NCBI GenBank assembly: GCA_002269645.1
Contig: NIVC01003165.1
Span: 51,852-115,851, forward strand
Length of the DNA stretch: 64,000 bases
Reading direction: 5' to 3'
Source of the DNA: Macrostomum lignano
Taxonomy: Eukaryota
The notes beneath the pieces were generated by a model, which did no database searches, was not told the DNA's origin, and saw nothing but the letters and a program-made list of their open reading frames with translations. Below are positions 7,046-35,159 of this stretch, piece after piece. Every line of letters begins with the position of its first letter. Position 1 is the first letter of the stretch. The translations under genes and the position numbers were made by a program.

Positions 7046-8896
7046 TTACCGAACGCACTCGGTGGGACAGTTGTCATAGAATGATGGCAGCGGCTTTGAA
7101 AGGATCAACAAAGGCAGTTGAGTTTCAGCATCTTCAATATCGTTGGCGGCAGTTCGGAAATCACCGTTCTGTCTGCTTCTGGGCAAGCTGCCAAGAGCTC
7201 TGGCAAAATTCTCGTCGGCTTCTTCGGTTGCGCCTGCACCTGCTGCTGCAGGCTGTTTGGCTGTGAATCCGCAGCTTTGCAGCAATCTCTTACTGGATAG
7301 GTAGAGCAGCTCCAGCAGCTCGAATGCAGTAGTGACAGTCACGCCCAGTGTGAGGCCTCCCATACCTCCAAGTCGGCTCAGGAGCGCGCTGAGACTGATC
7401 TGGAGGGTCTCCCTGTTCACCTGCGTGGTGTAGTCGAACCGGCTGACTGTCACTAGGGCCATTTTCTTCGACAGCCGTTTTTCCAAGCGACGAAGTCTGG
7501 TAACCTGCGGAGCGGTGGCGATTAACTCAAGTTGGCTAAAGGACAGCAGCTGCTCCAGCTTCTCTACCGCTTTCCGGCTAACGGGCCGCTCGGATAACGC
7601 ATTCAACGCACTGGAAATGTCACTCATCCAGTGGATCTGCCACAGCCGAAGAAACCAATCTGCGGCCGACAATTGGCTTTCGTAGTGAAAGAAGCTGCAA
7701 CGTTTCGGGCACTCCGTCTGGCTGACACTGTTCGTCAGCTCGCTCAGATTTAGGTTGCGGACGCAGTTCAGTCTTCGAATAAAATCCATTGGATGCTCAG
7801 CGCTGTAAAAGCCGCAGTAGGGAGCCTTTTCTTGGGCATCGCTAGCCAAAGGTCGCACATGGTAGGTCGAAGTGCAATTGCACTTTTCCGTAATCAGCTG
7901 GCCGATGTGGCTGCTTAGACATGCATCAAAAGTATACAAGTACTTGCTGTCATCGTCCTGAATTATCGGCAATTGAGACGCTTCGGAGCATTCACCCTCC
8001 GGACAATTCTGTTTTTCCACCTTCACTGGCCGGTACTTGATCAGCGTCGAAGTTTGCATTTGTACGCTGAAACTCTGCGTGTCAATTAGCGGATAGGTGC
8101 CCGGCTCATGCAGAACGATCCGAAACCCGGAGGCTTCGTTAAACACGTTGAATGCGTAGTCTTCGCTTGACGAATCCTCCAAGTCAGACTCCGTCAGATT
8201 GAAGTCGTTCATCAGCATTTCATTTTGGTGAGCATTGGATAGCAGAATCGACAAGCTGCTCACGTAGCTAGAATCTGGCTGCAAAAGCTCCAGGTCGTGG
8301 CAAAAGAAAAAATCCGGATGATGAAAACTGCTGCTTTCCTGGAACTCGCAGTCCTCTTCGTGAGCCACTGATGGATTGCCATTGGCGCTGTGTCGCATGA
8401 TGCAGAACGGCATTAAATCATTGAAGCTGTACGCCAGCTGCTTGGCAGAGGACTCGTTGATGAACTGAAAATAGGTGGACACCTTGTCGCTGTGGAATAA
8501 GCTGGCCGCTTCTTTGTAGCGACCGTCCCGCAAAAAATCTCCCATGCCGCGGCGAAGCTGGCGGGAGAATTCAGCCGGACTGGCAATGCGGCCTTCCCTC
8601 CAGAGCTTCAACGCCCGCGCGGAGAACGGGCTCATGGAGCAAATCGTCAAGCTGGGAAATGGCGTCGGGTCGTTGAGCCGCTTCTCAATCTGATAGCTCT
8701 TGTGGTACTCGAAGAACTCACTGAACAGGTCGCAGGTTCCGTAGCCAAGTAGAACGGTCATGCTGATGAGGTAAAGCAGCCACAGCAGACGCAGTGCTGA
8801 GTACTTTGTGGTGTAGCACTTCTTTATGCCACGAATAGTTGTATTTTCGATAAATGTAGATACGAGAAATTTTGGAAAGGCTAGGGTTTTGCTCAT
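7046..8896 (-). CDS. DEG/ENaC (ASC family) amiloride-sensitive-type sodium channel subunit, single exon, 616 aa
   Basis: Pre-TM1 'TTIRG', hydrophobic TM1, 'FPSLTICSMSPF', 'GFRIVLHEPG.YP', Cys-rich thumb ('C...C...CNC...C...C...ECP..C'), TM2 'LSRLGGMGGLTLGVTVTTAFELLE'. Confidence 0.93.
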   Translation of the reverse strand: MSKTLAFPKFLVSTFIENTTIRGIKKCYTTKYSALRLLWLLYLISMTVLLGYGTCDLFSEFFEYHKSYQIEKRLNDPTPFPSLTICSMSPFSARALKLWREGRIASPAEFSRQLRRGMGDFLRDGRYKEAASLFHSDKVSTYFQFINESSAKQLAYSFNDLMPFCIMRHSANGNPSVAHEEDCEFQESSSFHHPDFFFCHDLELLQPDSSYVSSLSILLSNAHQNEMLMNDFNLTESDLEDSSSEDYAFNVFNEASGFRIVLHEPGTYPLIDTQSFSVQMQTSTLIKYRPVKVEKQNCPEGECSEASQLPIIQDDDSKYLYTFDACLSSHIGQLITEKCNCTSTYHVRPLASDAQEKAPYCGFYSAEHPMDFIRRLNCVRNLNLSELTNSVSQTECPKRCSFFHYESQLSAADWFLRLWQIHWMSDISSALNALSERPVSRKAVEKLEQLLSFSQLELIATAPQVTRLRRLEKRLSKKMALVTVSRFDYTTQVNRETLQISLSALLSRLGGMGGLTLGVTVTTAFELLELLYLSSKRLLQSCGFTAKQPAAAGAGATEEADENFARALGSLPRSRQNGDFRTAANDIEDAETQLPLLILSKPLPSFYDNCPTECVR

Positions 8897-10265
8897 GTTG
8901 TAATTCTAGGCAAGGGAAGTTCTGGATGTATCTTCTTAGGATGGCAATCACTGCCCAATTATGGCATTAAAGCTGCAACTACTTTTGTGCGCCCAGAACT
9001 TTTACGTGAATTTGCGTGCAATTTTCAAATACAGTTGTATTCATTTCATTGGCTATGTCTGTCTCTGGCTAAACTGGACGAGAGCGAATCCGGCGCTGCG
9101 ATATGATTACTACCACCAGTGATGCGAGCCGTAGAATGGAAAATGCCTGTGAAGACTCCGATTGGTCGTAGGTTTTGGTGTTGAAACTCTTACTATCAGC
9201 AGTATAATACATAATGCATGCACGTGTACTGTACAGTTGTATGTGTAAACTCTTAAAATTTCCAACGACAGAATGACATTGCTTGATTTTAGATAGGTGA
9301 GTTTGGTCACTGAGGAGTTTTTAGGTAAAAATATGAGGCACGGCCGGCTACTCGAAGACGCGGTTCCACTTTCGTTAATTTTGTCGTAGGAGTTCCTAAT
9401 TTCTATAGAGCCAATTAAATTTTCTCATGTGCGAGGCGCGGCTGTAAGCGTTAATTAATCTGACCCCCAAAAGTACTCCAGAATTTTTTCGAATGACGAG
9501 CGCGTATTTTTCTCTTACATGTAAATCTCTTTAAATTTTCCATTGTAGCTTGAGTAGCTCGATCGCATTAATCTCCTATTATCTTCGGTAATCTCTTGCG
9601 GAAGCTAAAATATTTTGTCGTCATGCACAAATTTTTAAATTACGGCTAGACATGTCAAGTTTCTGGGGGTCTGGGAGAGGCCACCTATTATAGGGGATGC
9701 TGTTTATAGGAGTTTAAGGCTTAGAGCCAATTAGAGTAGAGGCATTCAAATCCTAACTATAACTGCATACTATATACTACATAGTGAGTTATTGGGACTT
9801 AAAATATTAATATATAACTGATATCAAATTCATACTGTACACATCCAGTTAATTTTCAAGTTACATACAGGAATTACTGACTTTTATATGTATGTATAAG
9901 GACTCTGTTCTCCAGCTGAGTGATAAATTATGGATGCTTGGATCTAGCAAGCTAGCTATAAATTCCTATAATCGTCTGACATGTGTACTTCACCGGTTCA
10001 CCCCGCAACATCATAGTGCTACTCACATTGAAAAATATTCGAAGAATCATTTTTTAACAAGCATATTGCTCCTTTATCACAAAAAGTAAAAAGCTGTTCC
10101 CACGAAATATTTTAGGCCTACTTAACGCATTAAAAGGGTCATTTTTTATTTCAATATGGTCTGTATTTGTTAGGCCTAATTGCCAATAGCCCTTTGTTAT
10201 ACAATACTGCGTTCTCGGAAATTTTGATTTTCGTTTTTCGCTTTTGCATATTGTAAACTTAACAG

Positions 10266-11212
10266 ACGTATCTGTTTCCCCATAGATATTCGTATTGATA
10301 TTCAATTTCTAACAAATGCAACAAAATAAACCTACTTGTACAGCTCGGATTTGCATGAAAATTTACAGAAAAATTATTACACACAAAACAAACACCTCTG
10401 TGAAACTTCAAGTCCATCAGACCACGCAAAGCGGAATGGCAAGAGTTTTAAAGGTGCTCGTATTTATAATGCATTGTATATGCGCACAGTGTATAACATG
10501 TATGCCCATTTGCAACACTTGTACAGCTCGGATTTGCATGAAAATTTACAGAAAAATTATTACACACAAAACAAACACCTCTGTGAAACTTCAAGTCCAT
10601 CAGACCACGCAAAGCGGAATGGCAAGAGTTTTAAAGGTGCTCGTATTTATAATGCATTGTATATGCGCACAGTGTATAACATGTATGCCCATTTGCAACA
10701 CTTGTACAGCTCGGATTTGCATGAAAATTTACAGAAAAATTATTACACACAAAACAAACACCTCTGTGAAACTTCAAGTCCATCAGACCACGCAAAGCGG
10801 AATGGCAAGAGTTTTAAAGGTGCTCGTATTTATAATGCATTGTATATGCGCACAGTGTATAACATGTATGCTCATTTGCAATACTTGTACAGCTCGGATT
10901 TGCATGAAAATTTACAGAAAAATTATTACACACAAAACAAACACCTCTGTGAAACTTCAAGTCCATCAGACCACGCAAAGCGGAATGGCAAGAGTTTTAA
11001 AGGTGCTCGTATTTATAATGCATTGTATATGCGCACAGTGTATAACATGTATGCTCATTTGCAACACTTGTACAGCTCGGATTTGCATGAAAATTTACAG
11101 AAAAATTATTACACACAAAACAAACATCTTTGTGAAACTTCAAGTCCATCAGACCACGCAAAGCGGAATGGCAAGAGTTTTAAAGGTGCTCGTATTTATA
11201 ATGCATTGTATA
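10266..11212 (+). repeat. Left TIR: ~70 bp unique end plus ~4.8 copies of a 183-bp unit
   Basis: Unit starts recur at 10335, 10518, and onward. The ORFs 10316..11215 and 10336..11262 show a 61-aa periodicity. Confidence 0.95.
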
Positions 11213-11419
11213 TGAATTCCAATCCCAGCCGGAACTACTTTTGCTTGTGTTCCAGAATATGAAGTTATACTCAAACACAGAACTTGTTAATAATTATAGG
11301 ATAGAGTTAAAAATAAAAGTGGAGTATAAGTTCGTATAAAATTAGAATTTGAGGCAAGCATTAATCACATGTTGGCTTGTGGTGTTGCCCAAGAATGTCA
11401 GGCAATGTCTGTCTTAAAA

Positions 11420-12576
11420 CAAGTATTGGCAAACTCCGGCCTCTGTCCCTGCGCCTCCCTACGTCCCTAGATTCCTTTGAAACTTCAGTCAATTCTCTAC
11501 TGTTTCCTCTCTTCTCTATCGTCTCTCATCCTTTCCCTCCCATCTCATCTCATCTCTTTTTTCCTCTCTCCTTTATTTCTTCCTTCTCCCCGATCTTTTC
11601 TTGTCTCTCCTTATCTTTCTTTGGTTTTTCTACTCTCTTCTCTCTCATTGCTTTATCATCTCTCCTTTCTCTTCTTATTTTCTGCTCTCTTATCTCTTCT
11701 TATTTATCTCTGCTCTCTACTCTCTATTCTCTCTCCCCTCTGTATAAATTCTCACTCCTCACTCTCCCCTCTTTCTTGACACTTCCCACTTCTCTCCTCT
11801 CTCCGATCTCTTCTCTCTACTCTCCCCCGATCTGCTCTCGTCTCTCATCTCTTCTATCATCTCTTTACTCTCTCCTCTCTCGTCTCAATCCTCTGTAATA
11901 TATCTTTCCTGCCTCATACTCTCTCTCATTATCTGATCTGTAGTCTCCTTTTATCATCTCTCCTCTCTCAACTTCCTCCACTACTCTCACCTCTCCTCTC
12001 CATCTCTCTCTCCCTCGCTCTTATCTCTCCACTCATCTCTCTGTTCTCTGCTCTCCCATCTCTCATCTCCTTACTATATTCTCTCCCCTCTCCGTTCTTC
12101 TCTTTCCTCTCCTCTCCCCTGTCTCTCCCTTTCCCCTCTCTCCCTTTTGCTCTCGATTCTCTCCCATCTTTTCTCCTCTTTCCTCACTCCACTTCTCTCT
12201 CTCCCTTTGTCTCTCCTCTCTGCTTTCGTGTCTGTAATAGATTCTCTCTTATCACTTCTATCTCCGCTGTTCTCTATTCTACCATCTGTCGTCTGTTCAC
12301 TCTCGTATCTGCTCTCTCGATCATCTCTACTCTCTATTCTGTTATCTTTACTCTTATATGTTCTCAAATCTCTCCTCTGTACTATTTTCTTTCCCCTCTT
12401 ATGACTCCTCTCTTCCAATCTCTTCTCTCCTCTCTCTCCACTCTCTAATCTCTAATCTCTTCTCTCTCATCTCTACTTTCTCCTCTCTCCTCTCTCTCCA
12501 CTCTCTAATCTCTACTCTCTTCTCTCTCATCTCTACTTTCTCCTCTTCCCTCTCTCTCCCATCTCATCTATCTCCT

Positions 12577-12633
<57 letters not shown>

Positions 12634-12730
12634 CTCTCTCTGTCTCATCTCATCTCTCTCATCTCTACTTTCTACTCTCTCTTCTCCTCATTTCATCTCT
12701 CTTCTTTCTCCTCCAATTTGCAGCCCTGAG
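11420..12730. repeat. ~1.3-kb polypyrimidine (CT-rich) low-complexity tract including (CT)n
   Basis: Almost only C/T on the plus strand, with pure (CT)n near 12580-12630. Confidence 0.9.
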
Positions 12731-13382
12731 AGGAATTTGTGTATCTCCAGCTCCACTGCACTCCAGCAGTCTAACAACCTATATTGCGTAGCTACTTTCT
12801 TATATCTATCTTCAGTTCATGTGCACTCGTCCTGTTTACTGTTTTTTGCCTCTCTGTCCAGCTATCTCTCTCCCTTGCTGCATTCTGATTGGCTATTTAT
12901 TATCGTCTCTTTCTTTAGTCGCGCACCCACCCCTATTTTTCTATCAGCACACTCCCCACCCCTCTCTTTTAGTTTAATCTCTGATAAATGTAGACCTGCA
13001 CGCTTGGTCCCTGCGTCCCACTTACTAGTTGCTTCTTTAATTTCAATTCTAAGTAAATTTTCTCATTTTCTCTTGAACGAATACTAGATTCTATATAAGC
13101 AATAACTTAACTGACCATTGAATTTTTCAAATATGTGGACTCGTGGACTCGTATTTTTCTTCGTAGTACTGACCACAATTCTAGTAACTTTCTGTTTTGG
13201 ACTGCCATCAAAAGAGCAGGTATTTGCAGTTTCATAACTTTCTGAATGCATGCAATGTCGAAACTGGATCTTTATCCGTAATTTTAAATGGGTTATTCCT
13301 ATTTTAGGCTCAATCTGTCCTGGTAGAAGCCAGTAGAATTTATCCTCCTCCAACTGGCTTTCGTCACTCTACACCACTTTAT

Positions 13383-16300
13383 GTGTTCTTATGTCGGGCA
13401 CTCAAAATTCGAAACCGACTGCGATCGCGGGTATATCTTTGGGGTCTAATGAATAGGTCGCTACATGTACCCCAGTCAACTGAGACGACTGATGCTGCAG
13501 GACGTTCCAACAGTGCATGTAGCCAGAAGAGCAAGAAAAATAAACCGACTGGAAAAGTCCAAGGAAAGAAAGCTCAGAGATCGAAAAATAGACGTGCATA
13601 TAATACAGCTGGCCAAAAACATTCAACGTTAAACGGGAGACGTCAGGCTGATAAAACGATTTATGAACCCAGCGACCCTATAGTAGAAAACGACGATGGA
13701 CAGAAAAGCGAAGATTTTTGCAACGCAGAGAATAGAGAAGAGAGAACAACGCGTGTACAAGTAGATTTGAATGCTACAAGCTCATCACAATCGACGTCAA
13801 ACGAACAACCACCAGAAGTTGAGGAAAGTTCTGATGAAACTGGGGAGAATCGGATCGAACTATCGGAGAGTGATATCTGCAAAATTAACCTATCGGTGGA
13901 AGATAGTCAATCTGGACCAAAGTATACGTTTTCAAAAAGTTTTCTTAATGAAGCAGTTTGCCGTGCTATGCGACAAGTCGCTACGTGCTGTTTGAGGATG
14001 ACGGGCTATAATCACATTCGAAAGCAGAATTCAAGAAAAAGTAAGCAGAATTTTTGGACAATTAGAGCGGAATGCAAAATTGAAGGATGCAGAAGAAATT
14101 ACGCTTTAATAATGAGAAGACCACCACGTGTTGACGGAACAACATGGTCTTGGGAGGTTATTATCACGGGAAGGTTAAACCATCAAGATGCTACGGCTAG
14201 TTGTTTTCGTAGAACGACCGAATCAGAAAAACGTGAAATTTACGACGATATAAAAGAGGCCGGTGCCGTTGAAGCATTCAGAAGACGCTTTCTTGCGATC
14301 GAAAATTTACCATTCATTCTGTCGTGCAACTTTGATGCGTGCAAAACCAAAACTGTGATGTATAATTTAAAAAGTAAAATGGAGAAAGACGAGAGGTTAC
14401 ACTCTGTTCTTTTTGTTGAGCTTGGAGGTCTACAAGACATTTTTAAACTTCGATATCCGCATCCGATTTTTCCTGGAGTCATAATGGAGCGTAGTTTAGA
14501 TCCACTACGTGTTGTATTATTGTCCAACCTTGAAATACAGCTTCTTAGAGCAATTATGTCAGCTCGTACTCCAACAGTGCTGCATATCGACGCTACTGGC
14601 TCGTTAATAGAAAAAAACTGTTCACCTCATCCTGTTCTACTCTATTCTGTCATCACAACTGCTACTGATTCTGTTCCATCGTCGCCAGTTGGGAATATGA
14701 TTACAGACTCCCATAACGTTGCATCCATTTCTCACTTTCTAAAACTCCTCCGCCATAGAATTCTGCACTGTGTAAACTCACCTTTTTCTGTTGACCTAAA
14801 TATTCTTTTTATTTCCGACTTTTCATGGGCGCAAATTCATTCATGCTTAGACTTCCACCACACGGACGTGACAACGTACATCCAAATGCATTACAATTAC
14901 TTTATTACGGACACCCCTAGCGAGATTCAATATGGCGTTTTTCTGTGTAGCAATCATATTATAAAGTCAATTTCGGACCACTGCAAAAAACACTCCTTGA
15001 ACCAGCGAAGCCGTCAGCTATTTTTGAAGTTATTTTCTTTAATTCAGTATTCCAGTACGCAAAAACTATCCGTCAACTTCATCATGGACACGCTTATTAT
15101 ATTTGGATCTCCGTATGCCGAGCAAACCGTTGCTGCTAGAACTAGGGTAGCAAATTTTCTGAGAGATGGCCATGTTCCAGAGTATTCCGAATCAATCAAC
15201 AAAGACTCATTTATACTTCAAGACAAGGATCATGCAAGTATGAACGCGGAAGGTGACGCGATACTGAAAAATTCTCCATACTACGAATACTTTAAAAAGG
15301 AATTTACCACAATTCAAAATACTCTCGCGCATAAAACCGGTCATTCGCATCTGACAGATAATGAATTCTACAACCCTCGATTGATAAACTTTTTCTTGCT
15401 TAGATACCTGTCCATCCTCCCTCTATGGGCTATATTTACATGGAATCATTTGATTGCTAAAAATTCAAAGTCTTTTTACTCAAATGCTCATGTGGAGAGT
15501 TGGTTTTCTTCTGTGAAAAGTCGATTTAACACCAAGTCCAGGCTGAGTACCTTCGTAGAGAATTATGTACCCTTTGTACTTCGTAGAGTTTCAGAGTGCA
15601 CCATCTCGAGCAAAGTACCTGCTCCAAGTTTTTGCAGAAAAAGGAAGTCATCAATCTCAGAAGAAGCTGCAACTGAAGGTTGGCAAAAAAGGTCGAGAAA
15701 TAGCAAGCGTTCAAGATACTCAGATACTAGTAGCAATCAGTATTTTGCTAATGTCGCCGATCCTGACGAAACGGAAAAGAGTAGCAGTCAGTCCCAACAG
15801 AGCAACCCAAAATCAAAACTTCCGGGATGCACAGCTGGTAGGAACAGACCCAATAAAAATTCCAGTCAAAATGGAACCGCAGATAACAGTAGAAGCAGGT
15901 GGCAAAGCAAGAGGAGCACGCGGCAGAAAGGAAGAACGGTGCAAAGCGATAATAGCCAGATTCTCTTCACCCTTCCTGGCTCTGGAACGGATATTCCCGT
16001 AACGCAAGAGCATCGTCAAAGTTTGTTGGGAAGCAACCTGTTAGACTACACGGTAAGTATTTTCATAAATACTTACTTACTTACAATAAATACTTAAGTA
16101 AGTATACGTAAATACTTACAATAGAAAATTCAGTTGACTTATGACCTATTTTCACCATTATCTTTTCCTGTCCCTCTTGCATTACTCGCGATAGATTTTA
16201 TTGGCCTATTGCACTGCTATCACATCGAACAACGCCCAAAGGATTGTAATAAGTGAGGGCGACTTTTACTACATATTGAATCTATCAGGAGATGAGTTCA

Positions 16301-17348
16301 ACGATGGAGTCCAGAACTTGCTGAGAAGAACTCTCGGATGGAAGGCAAGTTCTGTTAATGAAACAATAATGTCGTTTTTGATGCAAAATAAATTTGTACA
16401 CTTGTAGTGAATTCTCAATGAAAATCTTACGCATGCACCAATTTGAGGTATAAAATTATTTGCTCTCTTGATGTTGCAGGGCCTGAATCAAATAATCGTG
16501 CCTATTTTAAACAGCGGGCATTTTTACTTGATCGTTATTTGCGGCGTTGAACGAAAGGTCTTTGTGCTGGATTCGATTCGGCGTAATGCGCAAGAGAAGC
16601 AAGAGTTTCATGTTCTAATTCGCAAATGGAAGTGAGTACAATAGTTTGTGTACATGTCCAGAGAATAAATAAAAGTGAACTTAAGTACTGATGTGGCAAA
16701 TCTGTAAAATTTCTGTTAACTTTCTAGCCGCATATTGGCTTCCGATGGAATAATGGCATTTGTTGACCAAAGCGCTCCGGTATTCACCAGCAGCACATCG
16801 AAGCCATATGAGCTGGCCACAATGTCGAGAACAATGCAATCTGATGGTCATAGTTGCGGAGTGTTTGTATGCCTGTACGCTAGGGCATTAGCTCTTGGTT
16901 CTGGTCTCCGGTTCAAGAACAATCCGACGGCTCTCGGAAGATACAGACAGTATATCTGGAATGTGATCCAGGCCTACAGCTATGGAGGAACGCAGGAAGA
17001 GTGCTCAGCCTGTAGCAACACAGAACCTGACGCTTCGGGCGTTAGTCGTCGCATAAATTGGGTAAAATACGAGTAATTTTCCTTTTTTTATTTTTTTAAC
17101 TACGAATTTCACTTTTGCCAAGCAGATTGCTTAAAGCAGTCATACAGATTGAACTCCAGCTTAAGATGCAGTCGATCGAATATGCAGTCGAGTTGTGCTT
17201 ACAGCATAATGCGGTTAATTTTCGCTCACCCCTTCATTTCTAGATTGAATGTCCCTCCTGTCTTCGTTGGTATCACACAGAATGCGTCGAAGGGTCGACC
17301 GATCCAGGTTTTTGTTGCGCAACGTGCAAAGACATGTTTTCGCATTAG
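13383..17348 (+). CDS. MULE/NOF-like DDE transposase fused to a Ulp1 (C48) protease and a PHD finger; predicted exons 13383-16052, 16195-16344, 16480-16631, 16728-17061, 17244-17348
   Basis: Transposase motifs LHIDATG, ISDFSWA, LCSNH (CxxH) and NAHVESWF..VK. Protease motifs 'PILNSGHF.L...LDS' and 'QSDGHSCGVFVC'. PHD 'CSAC...W|IECPSCLRWYHTEC...FCCATC'. All exon phases are compatible when checked by hand, with one GC-AG intron at 16345. The start codon is uncertain. Confidence 0.85.
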
Positions 17349-18729
17349 TTACTTGATTTTTACACAACTGTACATGTACGTGAATGTCGCCATTACTCGT
17401 AAATGGATCTCTCCAGTTCCTTATTTTTGGAGCAAGAGGTTCTCTAGATCTGGTTCTGAGTGCACCTGTGGCAGTCGCGACGGCCAATCTTCCATGTACA
17501 GAAGGGTCGTGAGGCTGCTGCTTTTTGCTGCTAATTTTCTGACTAGAAAAATATGTATGGCCGCCCTCCCATCCCGTTGTTTTTGTTTGTTCGCCCGCTT
17601 TTTTCATCCCCCTATGCAGATGTTCGATTACGAGCCATGGAATGCAATATAATCAATTTATGCTAAGGACCACTCGAATTGGGGATCGACCGACATGGAC
17701 ATGAACAGGCGAACAACCATTCCCACTCGAACAAAACAGGGGGCTCTAACCGCGGCCCATGCAGGTGTTCGATATTCTTTCAGAGAGTGGAGCAGCGCTC
17801 ATTTAAATAGTTCAGTTTGCAACTTTCATGGGACTTCTCAGGGTTTTCAATCGGGCCTCTTCTACACTAAAAGTAGGACCTCTCGCCACAGTGGATCTTT
17901 GTGGCTCCGATTTAATCGAGAGCTTGACAACAGCGTGATGACTACTAAGAGTAATATTATTAGGGAACACATGCTCGATCTAATGGTTGGTATAGAGCGA
18001 TTATGAGCCGAACTGTTCAGTACATTTTGTATGTAAATCTATTTAAGTATTCATCTTTGTTGTAATTTAAATTCCTGTTATAACCTTTTTATTGGTTACA
18101 TGCATTTCATCAAAACTGTCCACGCTTTTATTGATGTTATTAGAAGTACCACGCGTGCATATACATAAATGCACATGTACGTAACATGTAATACTAAATA
18201 CATCAAAAGTTCTCAGCGACTGTCACTTTGAAAATTTCGAAACAAGTTTGTATTTTTAACCCAAGCTGCATATCCCAACGGTTGCATAGAGTGGTGTAGA
18301 AATTAGGCCAAATGTTGCGTTATTTTTGTGCTAGGCTTGCGTGCCAAGCCAAGAGGAGTCTACAATTGGCACCTGCGCTTCACAGGGCTGGCTTATACAT
18401 GTACATGCAATATTTGGCTCGCGTTAGTAATTCAGACTTATGACTTATTACGCAGCTACGATCAGAGACTGAATTGGTATAGGGTTAACAACAGAAATGT
18501 TTGTGGACAATAGCTATTTGCATTAATAGCAATGAAAATTACATTCTGCTAATTGAATTTTACATTTGCAACGTGAGTGGAATACTCACCAAAACAGTGC
18601 CGACATAATTCGCAGTCACGCATGCATGAGCTGGGTACATGTAACATGTATAATATACGGGCCTATATGCAGGTATTGCACTTCGCGTTGCATCGCGCTT
18701 ACGAGCTAGCAAGCTATATGTGCATCATA

Positions 18730-19490
18730 TAAATATACGATATACGAGCACCTTAAAAAAACTCTTGCCATTCCGCTTTGCGTGGTCTGATGGACTTGAA
18801 GTTTCACAAAGATGTTTGTTTTGTGTGTAATAATTTTTCTGTAAATTTTCATGCAAATCCGAGCTGTACAAGTATTGCAAATGAGCATACATGTTATACA
18901 CTGTGCGCATATACAATGCATTATAAATACGAGCACCTTTAAAACTTTTGCCATTCCGCTTTGCGTGGTCTGATGGACTTGAAGTTTCACAAAGATGTTT
19001 GTTTTGTGTGTAATAATTTTTCTGTAAATTTTCATGCAAATCCGAGCTGTACAAGTATTGCAAATGAGCATACATGTTATACACTGTGCGCATATACAAT
19101 GCATTATAAATACGAGCACCTTTAAAACTCTTGCCATTCCGCTTTGCGTGGTCTGATGGACTTGAAGTTTCACAGAGGTGTTTGTTTTGTGTGTAATAAT
19201 TTTTCTGTAAATTTTCATGCAAATCCGAGCTGTACAAGTATTGCAAATGAGCATACATGTTATACACTGTGCGCATATACAATGCATTATAAATACGAGC
19301 ACCTTTAAAACTCTTGCCATTCCGCTTTGCGTGGTCTGATGGACTTGAAGTTTCACAGAGGTGTTTGTTTTGTGTGTAATAATTTTTCTGTAAATTTTCA
19401 AGCAAATCCGAGCTGTACAAGTAGGTTTATTTTGTTGCATTTGTTAGAAATTGAATATCAATACGAATATCTATGGGGAAACAGATACGT
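18730..19490 (-). repeat. Right TIR: ~3.8 copies of the 183-bp unit plus the unique end, inverted
   Basis: Reverse complement of 10266-11212. ORFs 18706..19440 and 18725..19420 give the same peptides. Confidence 0.95.
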
Positions 19491-20809
19491 ACTTAACAGC
19501 GTGCTTTCTCTATAATAATCCTAATGATGCCACCAGCTGTTGTAGGGCTACTTCAAATTCCTACCCTGTAAATTTCCTAAAGCTGCCACCAAAGTTGTAA
19601 CAGTGCTGATTGCTCTCTATCTAATTTATGTTGTTGACACCAAAGTTGTTCTAATAGTCCCTATAATTCTTGTACTCTTACATATTTGTACTTCTAGTAG
19701 CATATATATTTATCAACTGGTAGCGCACGTATTAATCTACTGGTAGGTGGAAGGTAGCATATATACATGTACTGACACTGTACTGAGTTCTGACCTAAGT
19801 GGTCTTATGGCACTGTCTTACTGTCTAGTGTCTATCGGCTCTATCCTATCCTTATACTCTAAAAGTTTTTATTCTCTTAGTCCTAGATGTTCCGAGGATC
19901 AGAGGGTCATAGCTTACTTGCTGGGTATTCTCCCTTAAGGTGGGTTTCTTAGACTGTGAGTCTGGACTATTCTATCCTGTGGACCTGTGGTAGGATTTTT
20001 GCCTTCTAAAAGCAATTTCTTAGATTCTAAATCTGGATGTCTCATTCTCTAAGAATAGATTGAATTCTTTCAATCTTGGGGCTATTCTTAACTTAGAAAT
20101 AGCCCCAAATCCTAAGGAATCCTAAGTCATTATTTACCACTCAAAATAAGTAACACAAGAACAAATACAAGCCCTAAGGCTGATTGACTTACTTCTCCAA
20201 ATATAATAACTAGAGAGATACTTTGCAAATTGCAATTATAAGAATAGTTATTGTTCAATCAAACATGAAAACAATTTATTTGACTATGGCCCCTATTTAT
20301 AGTAAAATTTTCTTTGCTATTTAAAACAAAATGATGATATATAAAATATATAGAATATACAAAATATTTCTAATATTTGTACACTATAACAAAAACATGT
20401 AATTTTAAAAGATGATATTTATAAGAAATAGTTTTACTAATAAATGAAGCATATTTCAAAATATTGATACTATGTCTATAATATAGGCCTTAGGCCTAAT
20501 TCTTATATATATAGTTTTAAAATTCTTTAAAATATTTTTCTTAATAATTAAGATAGTGTCTTTTGAAATAAAATAAAATAAATAATTTACTTTCTAATAA
20601 AATTTAGTTTTCTCTCTACTGACTTATTAGAGGTTGCCTTTTTTGTTTATCAATCAAAAGTCTAATAATGATGAAAAAAAATTTTTTACAAGCCCTATTC
20701 AGGAAGATGTCTTTTGTATACCAAATTGAATTTTCTTTAAACCCTCTATATTTAATGTACAATAGGTTAGTTTTAGCTAAGATGAAGTATACTTCTGGTG
20801 ATTGGTAGT

Positions 20810-22135
20810 CTGGGTGATTGGTAAAAATCTGGACATGGTTAGTTTTTGCCATAGACAAAATTTAACGAGGCAAATTTATTGAGCTGATGCTTTTGAGCAA
20901 TACTGGGGGTCTTCCTCACAACTTAAGTTGTTTTTTTCACTTGTTTGCCCCGTCACGTCTGAGATGCAGTCTCTAAATGAAGAGCAGCAGCGTAAACTGG
21001 TTGTACAATATAAAATTGAGCACCCTGGGCTGAGCAACAATGCAATCGCAAAATATTTTGCTGAGCTTGGTGTCCCAAGATCAACCATTTATGGAATTCT
21101 GGATTGCTACTCAGCAACTGGAAAAGATTCTGTGCTACGGAAGGAGGGGTCAGGACGACCAGCTACCAAGGTCACTGCCACTTTGATGGAGAAGATGTCA
21201 AATGATGCCAGGACGGGTCTGTCCCAACGCGAAATTGCACGCAAATATGACATCAGCCAGCCGTACGTCAACGAGATTCTCAAGAAGCAGGGACTAAGTG
21301 CATACAAGAAAGAAAAAGTGTCATTTGTGTCGTTTGAGTAGAAAGAGCGCCAGCGTGTGAGGATTGACAGGCTCTACCGTGCTGTGCTGGCAGGAGATGA
21401 CGGCGGACTGGACATTGTCATGGACGATGAATCGTACTTCTCTCTGTCATCCAATGTCATCCCTGGTAACAGGTTCTATTATGCAACAGCTCGAGGTGAT
21501 GCACCTGATGAGGTTAGGTGTTCACCCAGCAAGAAATTTGAGGCCAAAGTCTTGGTCTGGCTGGCCATCAGCAAGAAGGGCATGTCCAAGGTCTTCTTCT
21601 GCCACGGCAGCTCAATGAACAAATAGATCTACATAAGAGAGTGCATTCACAAGCGTCTATTGCCATTTATTAAGGAACAGCATGCTGACGGCAACTACCT
21701 GTTCTGGCCTGACCTGGCGAGCTGTCACTATGCTCGTGACGTCATTGACACATTTGAAGAGGAAGGTGTCAATTTTGTCAGCAAGGAGCTCAATCCTCCC
21801 AATGTACCACAGCTGCGACCAATTGAGAACTTCTGGGGGATGTTGAAGCAAAAGGTTTACCATCACAATTGGACGACGGACAGTCTGGAACAGCTGGAAA
21901 ATCGCATTCGCTACTGCCTCCGCCAGGTGGATCTGCACTGTGTACAGGAGATGATGACCAATGTCAAGTCCGGGATTCGCCGAGCTCGGGCTAATGGTGT
22001 CGGAGCCGTTTGGCAATGAGCCAGACAATCCCTTATATATTGAACTTAATCCAAGTTAAAAGACATGTGTTCAATTTGTTTATTGTTGTCTTGCTAAAAC
22101 AAATAAAAATGTCCAGATTTTTACCAATCACCCAG
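20810..22135 (+). mobile_element. Tc1/mariner-superfamily DD37E element (ITmD37E/TRT-like)
   Basis: 27-bp TIR CTGGGTGATTGGTAAAAATCTGGACAT at 20810, inverted at 22109-22135 and followed by TA. The left TA is not clean, and a partial TIR duplicate sits at ~20795. Confidence 0.88.
20964..22019 (+). pseudogene. DD37E transposase with two in-frame TAG stops (21339-41, 21624-26)
   Basis: ORFs 20928..21341, 21357..21626 and 21660..22019 share one frame. Motifs GSGRP, MDDESYF (D), FWPDLASCH (D) and PPNVPQLRPIE (E), with 37 residues between the second D and the E. Confidence 0.9.
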
Positions 22136-22139
22136 TAGT

Positions 22140-25100
22140 TGTCTTGCCTGTTGTCTAGAGGCCTTCTATAGGAGCGCTGCCACCAATGAAGTGTTGTTAT
22201 ATATATTTCTCAATAGCGTCTAAAGGTGGCCTGGCAGATCTTCTGGCTCCTGGTTGGTGACCTCCAGTTGGCGGTTTCTTAGAAAATAGTTCTCGTAGTG
22301 TAACTAGTGCTGCCACCAGCTTTGCAGAGTTGCAGCTTTTGGTGAGGTATTGAGCTCGTAGAAGCAAAAAACTAAGACGAGAAAAAGAGACTCGCACTTC
22401 GTGCAGATTTAGCAGTTCTTGCGCAGAGGTGCCCACCATCAGCAGTCCCTGCCAGGCTAGTGCGTGGTGAGAGCAAAAGTGCTAGCTACGGGCGATCTGA
22501 GCTGGCCTGCTAATTGATAGCAAGAACAATCAGAGGCAATCACACGCAAAGACGGGAGTCTTGGAATTTAAACTTTAGCGCACACGCTGAGCAAAACGGT
22601 GGAACGGAGAAATGGATACAGAAAAACGCGGAAACGCAGAAACGGAAGGCTTGTCTGAGCCAAGCCATGAGAGGGGATGCATTTATAGGGAGGATCGATT
22701 GCACCATAGCACAAAAGGCCCCCACTAAGAGTCACAAGTGACTCTGTTGCTATTTTTAGCAACAAACAAGCGGGCCCTGCCTCAGAGGAGGCAAGGGGGG
22801 GTCCGGGCGCACGTGATCTCCCCATAAACACAAGCCCAGCGCACAATGATGAAATCATTGCACTTTGGACTAAAGAAGGAAGAAGGCCTTGTCATGTGAC
22901 TGACTCACATGACAAGGGGAAAAGGCCTACAAGTGAAGGCACTCGTGACCATGGGACTGGAAAACGGAATGGCACTCCAAATTTAGAGATGCCAAACAGA
23001 GAACGAAACAGAGGCAGGCCAGACCAAGCTGTCTTGGCACTGCAAAAAGGGAAAATGAGACAAAAGGAGGCAAACGAGGACAAACAAACAGACAGGCAAA
23101 CGGGCAGAGGACAAGCCAGAGGACAGGCGAGGGGGGACAGGCAACTGCCCAGTGGCAGACAGAAGCCTAGGGCAAGGGCAACAGCTGACTAGTGTGGCGT
23201 CTAACTAAACTAGCAACTCACTACACTCTCCCCGTTTAAATAAAGAGGCGGAGTGAAGTGGCGCGCGCTTTATTTAAAATCAAATGCAGGTTTAATGCAA
23301 ATGTCAAATAAAAAGGAACGGAAGTTGAGGCCTAACATAAAATGTTGTTACGTAGTTGCTTGGCTGAGCAGGCCACAGAGTTCTCGCCCGATACCGCAGG
23401 GGCACCGGCCTGCTATCAGAAAGGCGCCTAAGTACCGGTGTGGGCGCCAATCCACTAAACAAAGGCGCTCTTCATTCCTGAGCTAGCTCCACACCTAGAG
23501 TGAGCAGCTGGTGGCTCAAAGGCCGCGACCTGAATAAAATAACTACCGGCCTACAACACCTTTATAGGGGCAACCCCCAAAAAGGGGCTGAGCTGGGCAA
23601 TTCCATGCAAACCTAGATGCTGGAGAACACCAACATTGCGGCATCAACAAACAACAAAAAGGGGAACTGCGGGCACTGGTCCCTAGGATAAATAGTGGGC
23701 CGGCTAAGGCAGAGTCGAGAGCAAGCATGTCTCCCTTACCGTTTACAGATAGTCCAGTGGAGGGCAAGCCAGGACCGCAGGCAGCTCTGCCTCGCTGCCA
23801 CCAAGGTGTCGCATCACGACCAGCGCGGCATGGTGCGCGGCGTATGGCCGCAGCGGCGGCTGCAGATCAGAGCCACTCAGGCGAACAGCCTCTTCCATAA
23901 TTGTCATGCGCTCAATGATGGTAGTCTGGCGCAGGCTGTTCCAGATAGGGCCCGCGAGCACAGCGGGCACGTGTCCATGGCGGGCCGCGCTGCCTAACAG
24001 ATTACTCGCCAGGCAAGAGGCGGCGGTCAGCAGCGCCGCTCGTCTGTCATCACTCATCATCCGGTAGCTCGCTGGTCTGGGTGCCGACATGGACCAGTAG
24101 TGGCGGGTCCGCCGGCGTGGGCGGCGGGGCGCGGGGCAGCTCGCGGCCCAACGCTTCCCGAAGGTCGTCCCACGGGTCGTTCGGCGGGTCTGGATCTCCG
24201 TGGCCGCTACTTGGCAGCGGAACGCCGTCAGCGATCGACATCGGCGACTCCGCCTGCGCATAATGGATCCCTGGCGGCGGCGCGTTCCGCGGCCCGGTAC
24301 TCGTGGCCTCGCCAGGATCATGTTGGCGGGCTGCACCCAGGGCTTCTGGTCCCGCTCCTGAAAAAGAATCAGCAATGTGGCGGCGGACCGCTTGGAGGCC
24401 TCGGCTGACCTCCTGCTCCAGTTGGACGTAGGCAAAAGCCGCGGCCAACCGCTGGGCCATGAGTCGGCGAACACTGCTGATCTCCGGCGGGGAATCAGCC
24501 GTTAGATCGATCACTTCAGAGCTTCAGCCCTGACAGTGTCCTGTGATCTGCGGCTTGGCCGGCTCCGCCGCGGCTCCGGCGACGGGGAGTCGCTTCGCCG
24601 GCCGTGCTCCCGTCCGCGTCGAGGCGGGCGCTCGGGATGCTCGCGGCCCTACACTTGGGCCAATTGGCGAGTGGCGAGAGGCCGGCGCGGAATGCCCATG
24701 ACCTCCGGGGAGGACGGGGTGCCCGGCCTTCGGCGGCTCCGACTGGGCCGGCCCTGGTCACTCTCGGATGACGAGCTTGGAGTCGGCTGGTGCTGTCGCT
24801 TGTGCATATCTGCGCTGCAAGGTTTTAATTTGTGCACACGCATGCGGGCAGTGCGACTAACGTACGTTTTGGCCCTAGGATCGCTAATCAGAAGCCTCTC
24901 CGGCGGCCTCCGATCCCTAACTGGCCTACCTACCACTACTGGTATGGGAGACGCTTCCACCTGAGTGGTGCAAGAAGGTGGCGCAGGAGACTGCACCGCA
25001 GAAAAAGGTTCGGGAAGGGGGGACGCATAGACAGGTGAAAAAGAAGCAGCAGGTGCAGACGCATTCAAACCAGGCACACCATCATGGCGATCACCATACG

Positions 25101-27412
25101 GCAGTGGCTCACGCCGAAATGCACTTGCCTGGCTCGCTGGTGTCGTGACCGGTCCACCTCCTGGCCGCACATCCGGGATCGCCAACGGCCGGAAGTGCCA
25201 CCGGAAGGCCGGCCATGCGTCATCGTCATCATCATCGTCATCGGGATCGTCCTCCGGGATCGGTGTCAGGGTCGCGGGTCCTGCACCGTCCGGGGTATCA
25301 GTCGACCTGCGGCGCTTCTTGGCCTTGTCGACTTCTGGATCCGAAGTCAGCTGGTAGTCGGCATCAGGTACGAGCAGCAGATTCCGGCGATGGACTACTA
25401 GCTCGTCGCGTCTGGCCCGCGGGTTTGGCACTGTACGGCGAATCTTGTAGACGACCTCGCCCTTGGGTTCGACTACCTCGTACAGCGCTTTGCGAGGTCG
25501 ATGGAACTTCGCCGCTTCATCCGGTTCGAGCACCGGGTTGTTGAGGAAAACCAGGTCACCGGGTTGGAGCTTCTTGGCGGCGGGCAGGTTCGAGTAGTGC
25601 TCGTCGCGCAGCTGCTGGTGCAGATGCAGGCGGTCTTTGGCCAGTTCGGTTGCTTCGTCCAATCGGCGCTGGAAGTCCTTGACATAGTCAGGCAGATCGG
25701 CATACTCCGGCAGCTTCTTGATCGCGTTGTCGATTGGTAGTCGAAAATCTCGACCAAACACCAGGTAGTGTGGCGTGAAGCCTGTCACCGGGTGTACACT
25801 AGAGCGGAGAGCCATCAGACAGGCTGCAGGCTGGGAGAAAGGTGTCCCAGTCGTTATGGTTGCGCTCGAGGAGGCAGGTGAGGACACTCTTCAGCTGCTT
25901 GTTGAGGTTCTCGACTTGCCCATTTGAAGCTGGATTGTACGGTGTTGTCGTCTTATTCCGGATGCCAAACAGGTCGCAGAACTTCTTGAAAGCTGAGCCA
26001 GTGAAATTGGTTCCTCGATCAGTGTGTATCCAGCATGGTACACCAAAGTCAGGGATCAAGCGCTCCTGCAGGATGTTGATGACCGTCTTGGCTTTCTGGT
26101 TACTCTTCCCAGAACTTCGCACACAGGGAAGCTCTGTACAGGTACTCGGTCTCGTCTTCGGGATTTACTTTCAAGACAGGCGCGGCACTTACTGATAAAG
26201 TTCTCGGTGACACGGGCTAGTCCGGGCCTCCAGAATCGTTCACGTAGCCGCTTCAACGTCTTCGTCTGGCCGAGGTGTCCACACAGTGGCGAACTGTGGA
26301 GCTCCTGGAGCACCTGGGCATCAAGAGACTCAGGCAGGACAACCTTCGGGGACTGCTGGCCGTCGGTCAGGTCGATCATCAGCAGGCCGTTGTCCTCTAG
26401 CAGATTATCATAATATCCGAGCAGGTTCCGCTGCTCCTTCGTCAGCCGCAACCGGGCGTCGAACTCAGGCTTCGGGGCTTTGTTCTCGACCAAGTTGAGC
26501 ACGTAGCTGATAGCTCGGTCGGCGCGCTGCGCGTCGACAAACTGCTGCCGCGTCATCGGCAACCTCAGAAAATCGGTGAGCACGGCGCGGCATGGCTGAG
26601 GGTTCCGGATTTCCTCAGTCTCCGCTTCTGTGGCTCGCAGTTGATCACACGACTCCGTCTTGTCGGCGTCAGGATTAGGTCGCTCCGAGGGACTTTGTCT
26701 CACAACGTCGGCGTACGATCGCTGATCTCGTTTCGAAGTTCTCATCGTCGCTCTCTTGACAGGAATTTCCGCAGCTGGAGCAGTGCACTTGCCTCCACTG
26801 CACAGCCCAGGCGACTCTTGGCTGTAGGGCGAGACGCAACACGTGAAGCACGCCTCGTCGCAGGCAGCCGTAGCCGTCGGCTCGATCATCGTCGTCATTG
26901 GGTGAGTCTTCTCCAGCACTGGGCGGTGTCGCAAAGGGGGACTCGACTTTCCGCACAGGCGATGAGCAGCTGTCTGTCGGCTCGGGGGACAGAGCGTTGA
27001 CCTTGCAGCCGTCGCGAGAGTCTGGCCTCTGTCAACACGGCGAGAACTCTCAGCGCAAAACTCCGGGGAGTTGAACTTACATTGCTGGTCTGGATTCGCG
27101 TTGTGGGCTAGCTGTCATCAGTAGGGCTGCTTGTTCAGTGGCCTCTGAGTCGTAGTCCATGGGCGTCTCCAGGTTCCGAGACCCGCAGTCTTGGACATCA
27201 TCAAGGAGGTCTACGTCAGCAGTGGCCTCCGGGGTTATGTCCGGGCGAATCTCCAAGTAACGGCAGTCGGCGTTGGCGTCGCTGCGGAGGGCTGAGGTGT
27301 CAGTGGCCTCCGGGTTGGTGTCCAAACCGGTCTCCAGGCGAGTGAGGGCGAGGGCGAGGGCGAGGGCAACAGCTGACTAGTGCGGCGCCTAACTAAACTA
27401 GCGACTCACTAA
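22140..27412 (-). mobile_element. Internally deleted Ty3/Gypsy LTR retrotransposon (3' LTR ~22140-23225; 5' LTR reduced to ~27340-27412)
   Basis: The LTR begins TGTAGTGAG on the minus strand at 23225, directly after a GGGGAGAG PPT. The same LTR start sequence recurs at 27350-27411. Integrase remnants lie between. The left boundary is approximate. Confidence 0.82.
24649..26934 (-). pseudogene. pol: Gypsy pol remnant: integrase Zn-finger (HHCC), partial rve core and C-terminal GPY/F region; RT and RNase H absent
   Basis: 'ELHSSPLCGHLGQTKT...RFWRPGL......CRAC', 'FGVP..IHTDRGTNF...TT.YNPASNGQVENLNK.LK', 'RSSVHPVTGFTP..LVFGR..RLPID'. The fragments are broken by frameshifts and a deletion. Confidence 0.9.
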
Positions 27413-27762
27413 GTTGAATAGGCTTAATATTGAAGCAAAAATAGGCCTGAAAAAAATTTTTTGTCTTCTAAATATTTTACAATATTCTTTATAAAAAAGG
27501 TGAATCAATTCACTTTTATAGACAAAGGGCTTATCAACTTGAGTTTATAAAGTAAAGTCCCTAGTTATTCCCTTGGTTGTTCTTCTCTATCCCAAGTCCA
27601 ATTTTTGTTGCTCTTTTTTGCCAAACCCAGCATTCCAGTATCACTGTGAATAAAATGACGTATCATTTATATACACATAGGTTACTCGGGCTCCACTTTA
27701 TGAGCTAAGTTGACCAGCCCTTTTTAGGATAAATCATTATGCTATATTAAAGGGGATGTCAA

Positions 27763-30432: not shown

Positions 30433-30699
30433 TCCGCTGTGCCACTATGTTCCGCTATGTGCTACTTTGCTGCCATTAAGCAGGACAAATGTGTTAACGA
30501 GAGGCACAAACCGTATCAGTGGCTGCCGTCAGCCGGCTTCAGTGAGCCCAGCCGATTAGACGTTGTTATCGAGCCTCGATTGCAAAGTACAACCGGGCGC
30601 ATCCAGGTTTTGAATCATTTAAACAGCTCCACCGTCATGGACAGGGCTATCGTTGTTCGAATTCGGTCAGAATTTCATGCGCCGAGTGCCAACGAACTG

Positions 30700-33975: not shown

Positions 33976-34382
33976 CATCCCCTTTATATTAGAATTTATA
34001 TAACACTTTGACATGGTACTCTTTGCTCTTGTGGCATTGTGACAGTTTTTCACCAATGTATAAGAAAATTGTATAATTTTTATATCATGGGCAATTTTCT
34101 GGATTAGATGCATTCCAGGATTTCCTGGTATAATATATAAAAATATGTATATATATATATATATATATATCATGTAATCCTGGCTAATGTGTTCATATTT
34201 CTATCCTTGTTGGAAAATCCTAACTAAATTCTTGTCAGTGGGTGACTTTTTGACAAGAAATAATTTTGCTAATAAATTGCATTGTAAAATAAAACAGTGT
34301 AGGTTGAAGTTAAGTTTAAGAGTTCCATATGGGTCCTCTCGCTAGTATTAATGATCTATAAAGTTCTGTACTTGACGATGAT

Positions 34383-34973: not shown

Positions 34974-35095
34974 TTGCAGTGCAGCTATTTGCTTTTTTAG
35001 TCCATCTATGAATGAACTGGAATCAGCACAAACAAACTACAAACTAAGTTATGAAAATCTGAAGGCAGTAGGATTTTCCAATCAGAATTTATGCG

Positions 35096-35159
35096 ACAAT
35101 TATCGGCACTTTAAGAGACTTTTTACGATATGCCTTTGTTTTAAAGTGCCGATAATTGT
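35096..35159. other. Perfect 19-bp inverted repeat with a 26-nt loop
   Basis: ACAATTATCGGCACTTTAA (35096-35114) pairs with TTAAAGTGCCGATAATTGT (35141-35159). Confidence 0.85.

Follow-up and report, generated by a model that had tools for sequence, protein, structure and literature searches.

Rehavkus transposons have been described as elements of 5-18 kb with a 9-bp target-site duplication, termini of 26-412 bp, a PHD finger and minisatellites, which are reported from arthropods and annelids only (PMC6446971). They have also been characterized as foldback transposons whose inverted termini are long and whose subterminal tandem repeats vary (bioRxiv 10.1101/2024.12.02.626372), and Repbase has merged them into MuDR (PMC4455052). 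In general, most foldback elements with long tandem-repeat arms and 8-10-bp duplications have been assigned to the Mutator superfamily (PMC4079207). Moreover, Ulp1 domains have been found in Mutator transposons of hydra and lancelet, and an alignment of Ulp1 and PHD sequences with those of Ginger1 has been shown (Bao, Kapitonov and Jurka 2010, PMC2836005). In this work, a stretch of 64,000 nucleotides from Macrostomum lignano was analyzed (contig NIVC01003165.1 of assembly GCA_002269645.1, positions 51,852 to 115,851, forward strand; hereafter, the window). It carries a 9,225-bp transposon at positions 10266-19490 which, as the best explanation overall, is very probably an autonomous, recently transposed element of the Rehavkus group with a transposase that includes a C48 (Ulp1-like) protease and a PHD finger as integral parts. 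To our knowledge, Rehavkus is known almost solely from Repbase entries.

The element is flanked by a perfect 9-bp target-site duplication, and both ACTTAACAG copies directly abut its ends, ACGTATCTGTTTCCCC... and ...GGGGAAACAGATACGT. The fuller terminus just inside the duplication reads ACGTATCTGTTTCCCCATAG... on the left and ...CTATGGGGAAACAGATACGT on the right. The inverted arms (10266-10998 and 18758-19490) measure at least 733 nt and are 99% complementary, whereas the whole inverted termini reach about 750-950 bp and are built mostly from 183-bp tandem repeats, whose number differs from copy to copy. These termini are foldback anatomy. A first-pass annotation of this DNA had described an intact foldback transposon of the Mutator superfamily with a perfect 9-bp duplication and matching termini; this description stands, with the superfamily taken in its broad sense, and the arms, the duplication and the profile and fold comparisons presented below agree on it. 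The features outside the gene are the following:

Left duplication copy, 10257..10265, no strand: ACTTAACAG, found as a single copy at the empty site in haplotig C4010.
Left terminal inverted repeat, 10266..11214, plus strand: 68-bp unique end ACGTATCTGTTTCCCCATAG..., then 4.8 copies of the 183-bp repeat (10334-11214).
TC-rich low-complexity, microsatellite-like internal region, 11604..12710, no strand: between the left terminus and the gene; variable among copies and with no coding signal seen in it.
Right terminal inverted repeat, 18742..19490, minus strand: 3.7 copies of the 183-bp repeat (18742-19423), then a 67-bp unique end.
Right duplication copy, 19491..19499, no strand: ACTTAACAG, the second of the two copies that correspond to the single one in C4010.

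The empty site and further copies were searched for in the window's own genome (764 Mb, 5,269 contigs). A search with the joined flanks recovered contig C4010, which spans the junction and represents the other haplotype, since window 1-36162 aligns collinearly with it at 97-99.5% identity. At the insertion point, C4010 reads ...TTGTAAACTTAACAGCGTGCTTTC..., with a single ACTTAACAG 9-mer instead of both copies and without the element, and therefore the insertion is heterozygous or polymorphic. Regarding the copies, a search with the 38-nt terminus found 36 termini (none with the reversed control), which form 14 paired copies of 3-15 kb and a few solo ends. Perfect 9-bp duplications flank nine of the 14 pairs (the window copy and eight others), and near-identical elements are in this way found with duplications that are all different: ACTTAACAG, CATAACTTG, ATTATACGA, CTAAGTTAA, TAGTAGTAG, GTCCCTGTC, CCTTCTGAC, CAAACGCAT and GGGCCGGCG. 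Two other pairs present a degenerate duplication (6/9 and 7/9 matches). The boundaries are not a chance match, because the empty site exists in C4010 and nine copies have distinct perfect duplications.

Whole copies are 99.4-99.75% identical to each other. The 4,216-bp gene is intact in four of them, at least 99.9% identical (the window copy and those on contigs C1737, C1092 and C85, which differ at 1, 4 and 2 positions, respectively, and keep the frame), and a fifth gene copy, on C2613, is disrupted. The element is very recently mobile, of the cut-and-paste type and very probably autonomous, and the recent activity suggested in the first-pass annotation is borne out by the polymorphic insertion and by these four intact copies.

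The element contains one gene, with six predicted exons and a protein of 1,190 amino acids (aa):

Exon 1, 13133..13219, plus strand: 29 codons, MWTRGLVFFFVVLTTILVTFCFGLPSKEQ; donor GT at 13220; equivalents in paralogs L035 and L036.
Exon 2, 13308..16052, plus strand: 915 codons; N-terminal motif, zinc finger, DDE core, basic linker and start of C48.
Exon 3, 16195..16344, plus strand: 50 codons, N-terminal half of C48; followed by the GC-AG intron 16345-16479.
Exon 4, 16480..16631, plus strand: C48 catalytic His1008 (16519-16521) and Asp1025 (16570-16572).
Exon 5, 16728..17061, plus strand: Gln1082 (16837-16839), Cys1088 (16855-16857) and the first PHD Cys pair, C1137/C1140.
Exon 6, 17244..17348, plus strand: rest of the PHD finger, motif WIECPSCLRWYHTEC; TAG stop at 17346-17348.

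The four introns after exon 2 (142, 135, 96 and 182 nt) are phase-compatible, with GT-AG, GC-AG, GT-AG and GT-AG borders, and L035 has a GT donor at the position where the window has GC. The acceptor of exon 2 lies at 13306-13307. The stretch 13308-13448 of this exon, before the first internal ATG, encodes a motif found across the family (...FRHSTPLYVFLCRALKIRNRLRSRVYLW in the window and ...SVWG..LG.RN..NR..Y..W in relatives), and no ATG is present between the acceptor and this N-terminal motif, either in the window or in L035. The only start codon is supplied by exon 1, which ends in phase 0 with the donor GTATTT and has an in-frame stop 7 codons upstream of its ATG. Hence, the earlier gene structure has to be amended: its four downstream exons, their phases and the GC-AG intron are kept, while the long exon has 915 codons instead of 904 and is not the first one, as it is preceded by the 29-codon exon with the start codon, whose leader had been missed. 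An exact-product look-up with the unspliced open reading frame (ORF) matched no record.

Exon 1 encodes a signal-peptide-like hydrophobic leader. Equivalent mini-exons were located in L035 (L035:2881-2952; paralog protein identity 53%), where MRYCAILIIVVIVTICDC is followed across the junction by LPPRDE, and on the reverse strand in L036 (paralog protein identity 37%), where MKLIVLIFTLFIACSC is followed by YPLKKE, both with a phase-0 GT donor. The three leaders show the layout of a cleavable signal peptide, with a basic n-region, a hydrophobic h-region and small residues at -3/-1. Among distant single-ORF relatives, P0074 and P0132 begin with a hydrophobic stretch and P0005, P0010 and P0016 do not; in the local lineage L026/L029 no convincing leader mini-exon was found.

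Concerning the domains, the protein presents, in this order, the leader, the N-terminal motif (aa 30-76), a WRKY-like zinc finger (C285, C290 and H321), the DDE core, the C48 protease and a C4HC3 PHD finger. The DDE core is composed of D457 (14589-14591), D533 (14817-14819), C576-x2-H579 and E759 (15495-15497). The family motifs LHxDATGS, (V/I)TDFSWAxIH, LCxxH and SNAxVExWFxxVK have the order and flavour of Mutator-like elements (MULEs), which in canonical MULEs of the same genome read FIDATYK, VTDKD, CLFH and TNNRVESLNQKLK; the last of these resembles the window E motif, SNAHVESWFSSVK. Both canonical MULEs (PF10551) and the IS256 family (ISCth4, 6XG8) share with the window the succession of D, D, CxxH and then N-x2-E-S/x-x-[NF]-x2-[LV]K. 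The 9-bp duplication, the N-terminal WRKY-type zinc finger and an IS256 enzyme as the best structural match are further points in common. Unlike canonical MULEs, the window protein is not detected by PF10551, and its D-to-E spacing of 226 residues is far longer than theirs because of a large helical insertion. All 146 PF10551 matches of the genome lie on other elements, and canonical MULEs form a separate population.

The relation to MULEs appears when profiles and folds are compared. With hhalign, the profile of 94 family sequences aligned with the PF10551-positive ORFs of the same genome at 96% probability (E 4.3e-9), and the D, D and CxxH motifs of both coincided in the alignment. The AlphaFold2 model of residues 246-816 reached a predicted local distance difference test score (pLDDT) of 89.6 and a predicted template modelling score (pTM) of 0.83, and its best PDB match by Foldseek was the IS256-family ISCth4 transposase (E 3.3e-4, probability 0.99), followed by Hermes and RAG1. 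In the predicted model, an N-terminal four-stranded sheet gave a weak match to WRKY domains (probability 0.84). A PDB sequence search with the transposase profile returned low-complexity noise only.

To place the element more precisely, six named Rehavkus DDE domains (Rehavkus-1_HR, -1_TC, -3_TC, -2_NVi, -1_DY and Rehavkus1_AP) were taken from the supplement of Dupeyron et al. 2019 (PMC6446971). All of them matched the hidden Markov model (HMM) of the family end to end, with 93-277 bits, whereas canonical MULE controls did not exceed 10 bits. In pairwise comparisons with the window core, Rehavkus-1_TC gave 62.6 bits and Rehavkus-1_HR gave 61.6 bits. In a FastTree phylogeny, the Rehavkus sequences nest, interspersed, among the family members, and the lineage of the window groups with unnamed relatives of marine and metagenomic origin in a sub-clade of its own. 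The element is a Rehavkus-group transposon, because the Rehavkus DDE domains match the family HMM and nest in the tree, and Rehavkus is a foldback-type sister or sub-group of the Mutator/MULE superfamily. The window element has all the traits of the group, namely DDE homology, the 9-bp duplication, a size within 5-18 kb, long repeat-bearing inverted termini and the PHD finger. Nevertheless, it differs from Rehavkus as described so far by its longer termini (about 750-950 bp, compared with 26-412 bp), by a C48 protease, not listed in the published summaries of the group, and by an exon for a hydrophobic leader. Its host is also a metazoan other than the arthropods and annelids reported. One relative with a name comes from the sea cucumber Holothuria leucospilota. 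Overall, there is high confidence in the identity and architecture of the element.

Other superfamilies with an Ulp1 domain or foldback arms were also considered. A C-terminal Ulp1 domain is found in Zisupton transposases, and Galileo has foldback arms that evolved in the P superfamily; the duplication lengths are 8 bp in Zisupton, 4 bp in Ginger1 and 7 bp in Galileo. Plant KI-MULEs, ULP1-carrying MULE and CACTA elements, Ginger1 and Zisupton all resemble the window element as DNA transposons with a clan-CE Ulp1-like protease. Ginger1 transposases, in particular, carry Ulp1 with or without a PHD finger (PMC2836005). However, Ginger1 relies on an integrase of retroviral type, Zisupton is a member of KDZ, and the duplication lengths of both differ from the one in the window, which is 9 bp in nine independent insertions. 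The match of the DDE core to Rehavkus (up to 277 bits) and the IS256 transposase as the nearest fold also argue against membership of the Zisupton/KDZ, Ginger1 or P-type foldback groups, to which we give next to no chance. These three groups were rejected on their wrong duplication lengths and on a Pfam search, up to E 10, without KDZ, CxC, integrase or THAP domains. Drosophila FB-NOF, Tetris and Tm1 were compared by foldback anatomy alone; they have 8-10-bp duplications and tandem-repeat inverted arms, as in the window. The published description of Tm1 mentions neither a protease nor a PHD finger, unlike the window element. The first-pass annotation had called the element NOF-like; its placement here is in the Rehavkus group.

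Regarding the C-terminal module, Pfam recognized the protease as Peptidase_C48 (PF02902) with E 2.9e-9 and 37.5 bits (cut-off 20.7). H1008, D1025, Q1082 and C1088, within the motifs HF, LDS and QSDGHSCG, align with the catalytic motifs of SENP2 and Ulp1, in agreement with the complete set of protease residues claimed from the first reading of the sequence. A profile of nine C-terminal module sequences matched the whole catalytic domain of SENP1 (1.3e-26), SENP2 (1.1e-25) and Ulp1 (7e-25), and gave only 5e-5 with the NEDD8-specific SENP8. The PHD finger has the pattern C-x2-C-x18-C-x2-C-x4-H-x2-C-x10-C-x2-C, with canonical C4HC3 spacing, and is split by the intron 17062-17243, also as first proposed; its ligands in exon 6 are C1159, C1162, H1167, C1170, C1181 and C1184. 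When compared with solved PHD fingers, the module profile matched DPF3 (1.4e-5) and BPTF (6e-4), as well as KAT6A, Alfin-like, PHF2 and PHF13. The motif WIECPSCLRWYH (W-IECPSCLRWYH) resembles methyl-lysine-reader PHD fingers such as those of BPTF, PHF2 and KDM7 (weak PDB matches), a similarity to reader-type fingers that is suggestive only. Altogether, the HMM comparisons proposed with the first-pass annotation confirmed C48, recovered the PHD finger by profile and not by single sequence, and gave no MULE match in Pfam.

The question then arises whether the protease and the PHD finger belong to the transposase. They could be cargo captured from the host in the style of plant KI-MULEs and Pack-MULEs, translated separately or not at all, as ULP1-like sequences, separate or captured, are known from plant MULEs and CACTA elements (literature in PMC2836005). 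In plants, such a sequence usually forms a gene of its own or one that has been captured, whereas in the window it is an in-frame domain of the transposase: C48 starts at aa 917 (15969), and its first 28 residues or so (TLPGSGTDIPVTQEHRQSLLGSNLLDYT, up to the exon border) lie inside the open 915-codon transposase exon. The donor position of exon 2 is maintained in the paralogs, which close that exon at the same place (...NLLEYS, ...NWLDYA and ...GWMDYS). At 26-53% identity, these paralogs keep the downstream exons, their phases, the His/Asp/Gln..Cys residues and the PHD-splitting intron; in L035, exons 3 and 4 have exactly the lengths found in the window (150 and 152 nt).

The constraint on the domains points in the same direction. 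Selection was measured against L035 as the proportions of nonsynonymous and synonymous differences (pN/pS) only, because synonymous sites are saturated and a synonymous rate (dS) is not computable. With pS saturated at about 0.8-0.9, the DDE core had a pN of 0.25 and C48 one of 0.30, so that C48 is about as constrained as the core; amino-acid identity was 62% and 55%, respectively, and 22-36% in the linkers. This comparison indicates that the domains of the element are kept under purifying selection across lineages with saturated synonymous sites. Furthermore, intronless homologs encode the whole order transposase-C48-PHD in a single ORF (P0002, of 1,010 aa, P0004, P0005, P0136, P0067 and P0150), and P0116, P0134, P0077 and P0099 encode the transposase and C48 without the PHD finger. 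The fusion proposed in the first-pass annotation is thus real according to four arguments independent of transcripts: the shared exon, the conserved exons of the paralogs, the constraint on C48 and the single-ORF homologs. C48 and PHD also recur in long family members from other sources (see below). Capture of a host gene was rejected on the shared exon, the conserved donor, the single-ORF homologs and the constraint, and is considered very improbable. We infer that the protease and the PHD finger are an integral, selected part of the transposase and not captured host cargo.

The family to which this protein belongs is large and essentially unannotated. A profile search of 1.84 billion representative proteins found 3,968 relatives at E<=1e-3, 508 of them at <=1e-30, while the homology search with the single protein gave only 2 matches. 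The names recovered were one hypothetical protein of H. leucospilota and metagenome or "MAG" (metagenome-assembled genome) entries. The range of Rehavkus is in this way widened to about 4,000 sequence clusters, one of them from an echinoderm. In a Pfam scan of 38 long relatives from other sources, C48 passed in 11/38 and PHD in 7/38, and instead of C48 an OTU domain was present in 2/38 and UCH+DUSP in 1/38. The isopeptidase domain is a recurrent and exchangeable part of the family, because C48, OTU or UCH+DUSP occur among these 38 members.

Some features of individual relatives should be mentioned. One of those scanned carries a YqaJ recombinase domain, and others have the PHD finger in an N-terminal position instead. 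In the closest single-ORF homolog outside the genome, P0002 (Logan SRR29660190; L037:2273-5305), the first catalytic Asp is substituted by Asn (LYLNATGS), and in P0004 and P0005 it is the Asp of the protease that has changed to Asn. Such substitutions may be tolerated, or the copies may be inactive. P0013 and P0018 (NCBI MES9880808.1 and MES9883988.1) are deposited as proteins of a Sedimenticola sp. MAG, and most likely derive from DNA of the host animal binned with a symbiont.

Several points weigh against an autonomous Rehavkus-group element with an active C48-PHD transposase. Three of the 14 copies (C1737, C1092 and C3280) are otherwise complete and have no matching duplication, although two of them still have intact genes; no reciprocal partner junction was found among their 6 junctions and the 8 unpaired termini, and these copies may be assembly mis-joins in near-identical 9-kb repeats or (foldback-mediated) rearrangements. 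Up to E 10, no Pfam family matched the transposase portion, and the link to canonical MULEs comes from the profile and predicted-fold comparisons, which indicate that both are remotely homologous. All the splice junctions, including the GC donor and the leader exon, are predicted from conservation only. A leader on a nuclear enzyme is puzzling, since it is unexpected and hard to reconcile with that location. The PHD finger of the window alone gives 16.6 bits in Pfam, below the cut-off of 24, and no established biochemical function of any transposon-borne C48 domain was found in the literature consulted. Finally, in the structure of Ulp1 with Smt3, the SUMO Gly-Gly is clamped between two Trp residues, one in the WLND motif and one following the catalytic His, and this pair is replaced by Leu (NLLDY) and Phe (HF) in the window and in L035, whereas some relatives keep one or both Trp residues. 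The substrate of C48 is uncertain because of this replacement, as regards SUMO specificity and even activity.

C48 might then not be a deSUMOylase at all. It could act on another ubiquitin-like modifier, or it could be a self-processing or maturation protease of the adenovirus type of clan CE that cleaves the fusion protein, freeing, for example, the transposase from the leader or from the C-terminal module. This possibility, which we consider rather unlikely while still giving it some weight, would be in line with the loss of the Gly-Gly-clamping Trp pair and with the membrane- or secretory-type leader. The relatives with OTU or UCH/DUSP also fit it, as they suggest that a general ubiquitin-like isopeptidase activity is selected, and not SUMO specificity. 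However, the module profile is far nearer to SENP1, SENP2 and Ulp1 (1e-26 to 7e-25) than to SENP8 (5e-5) or to the bacterial CE-clan enzymes ChlaDub1, ChlaDub2 and RickCE (2e-5 to 5e-3), and an obvious cleavage site for self-processing was not identified in the protein.

Returning to a transposase with an isopeptidase as an integral part, a mechanism can be proposed. The zinc finger and the N-terminal motif would bind the iterated 183-bp subterminal repeats, and the DDE core (D457, D533 and E759) would catalyse excision and reinsertion, cutting the target with a 9-bp stagger. The PHD-C48 module could be an isopeptidase tethered to chromatin, acting on conjugates of SUMO or a related modifier either around the break or at the element itself. 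It may help transposition by stripping SUMO-dependent repressive marks from the element or by modulating the repair of the donor or target site. A role of Ulp1 in repair was already speculated by Bao et al. (PMC2836005). We argue that the isopeptidase activity is selected for transposition, because C48 and PHD are constrained like the core and C48 is swapped for OTU or UCH in the family. Nonetheless, a chromatin-tethered isopeptidase aiding transposition is proposed tentatively, and we would put its chances somewhat below even. In the same way, the protein may act as a histone-mark reader and a deSUMOylase with a counter-silencing role, as the first-pass annotation had suggested from the sequence.

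A more elaborate version, which we regard as improbable, is that the PHD finger reads the chromatin state and C48 (OTU or UCH in relatives) removes SUMO or ubiquitin marks, a module that the element would require in order to escape SUMO-dependent silencing or to finish repair; in addition, the leader would be a targeting or self-limiting device by which most of the enzyme stays outside the nucleus. If true, such regulation would be without a described precedent among transposases.

As for the novelty of the architecture, it is lower than first claimed. The transposases of the hydra and lancelet MuDR elements (Repbase Reports 2008/2009, in PMC2836005), compared here by description, have C-terminal Ulp1 and PHD domains like the window element, and may well belong to the same clade, because Repbase merges Rehavkus into MuDR (PMC4455052). 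Ulp1 and PHD on animal Mutator transposases were already figured in 2010 (PMC2836005), and the Rehavkus traits are published. With a close architecture on record since 2008-2010, the novelty is reduced, a consequence that the first-pass annotation itself had foreseen for such a case. In short, its observation is confirmed, and its interpretation holds for the fusion and the recency and not for the novelty. What is new here is a fully resolved, intact and still-polymorphic member of the group in another metazoan, the evidence for C48 and PHD as constrained parts of the transposase, the exchange of C48 for OTU or UCH among family members, and the leader exon.

Catalogues of transposon-borne Ulp1, OTU and UCH domains go back more than 15 years, with no function demonstrated so far. 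The window element offers a clean experimental handle on them, with a low copy number of about 14, four of them intact and essentially identical, one heterozygous insertion and a resolved gene model. The role of the isopeptidase is relevant to the ways in which DNA transposons deal with repair and with SUMO-dependent silencing.

With respect to the surroundings of the element, an intronless ORF for a DEG/ENaC channel (619 aa; Pfam ASC, E 6e-50) lies at 7046-8905 on the minus strand. The element is inserted 1.36 kb upstream of the start of this ORF, a position that fits the Mutator habit of insertion near the 5' ends of genes. A THADA/Trm732 gene is present at about 53.9-55.5 kb of the window.

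The assembly retains both haplotypes, with C4010:56130-74900 corresponding to window 1-36162 at 97-99.5% identity. They also differ by kilobase-scale insertions and deletions: window 2602-3587, 20792-22135 and 35034-35472 are missing from C4010, and C4010 65080-65393 is missing from the window. A second insertion absent from C4010, at about 27748-33986, is a non-coding foldback element of 6.2 kb, with a 161-bp unit repeated in tandem about 17 times in each of the two inverted arms. Its ends (TAAAGGGGATGTCAAC...) show no relation to those of the Rehavkus element, and its duplication looks short, possibly ATATT. Adjoining this second foldback element there is an ORF with an integrase zinc-binding domain of retroviral or retrotransposon type (Integrase_H2C2, E 3e-16), at window 26056-27114 (minus strand) and 23743-25890, which points to a Gypsy-like retroelement remnant.

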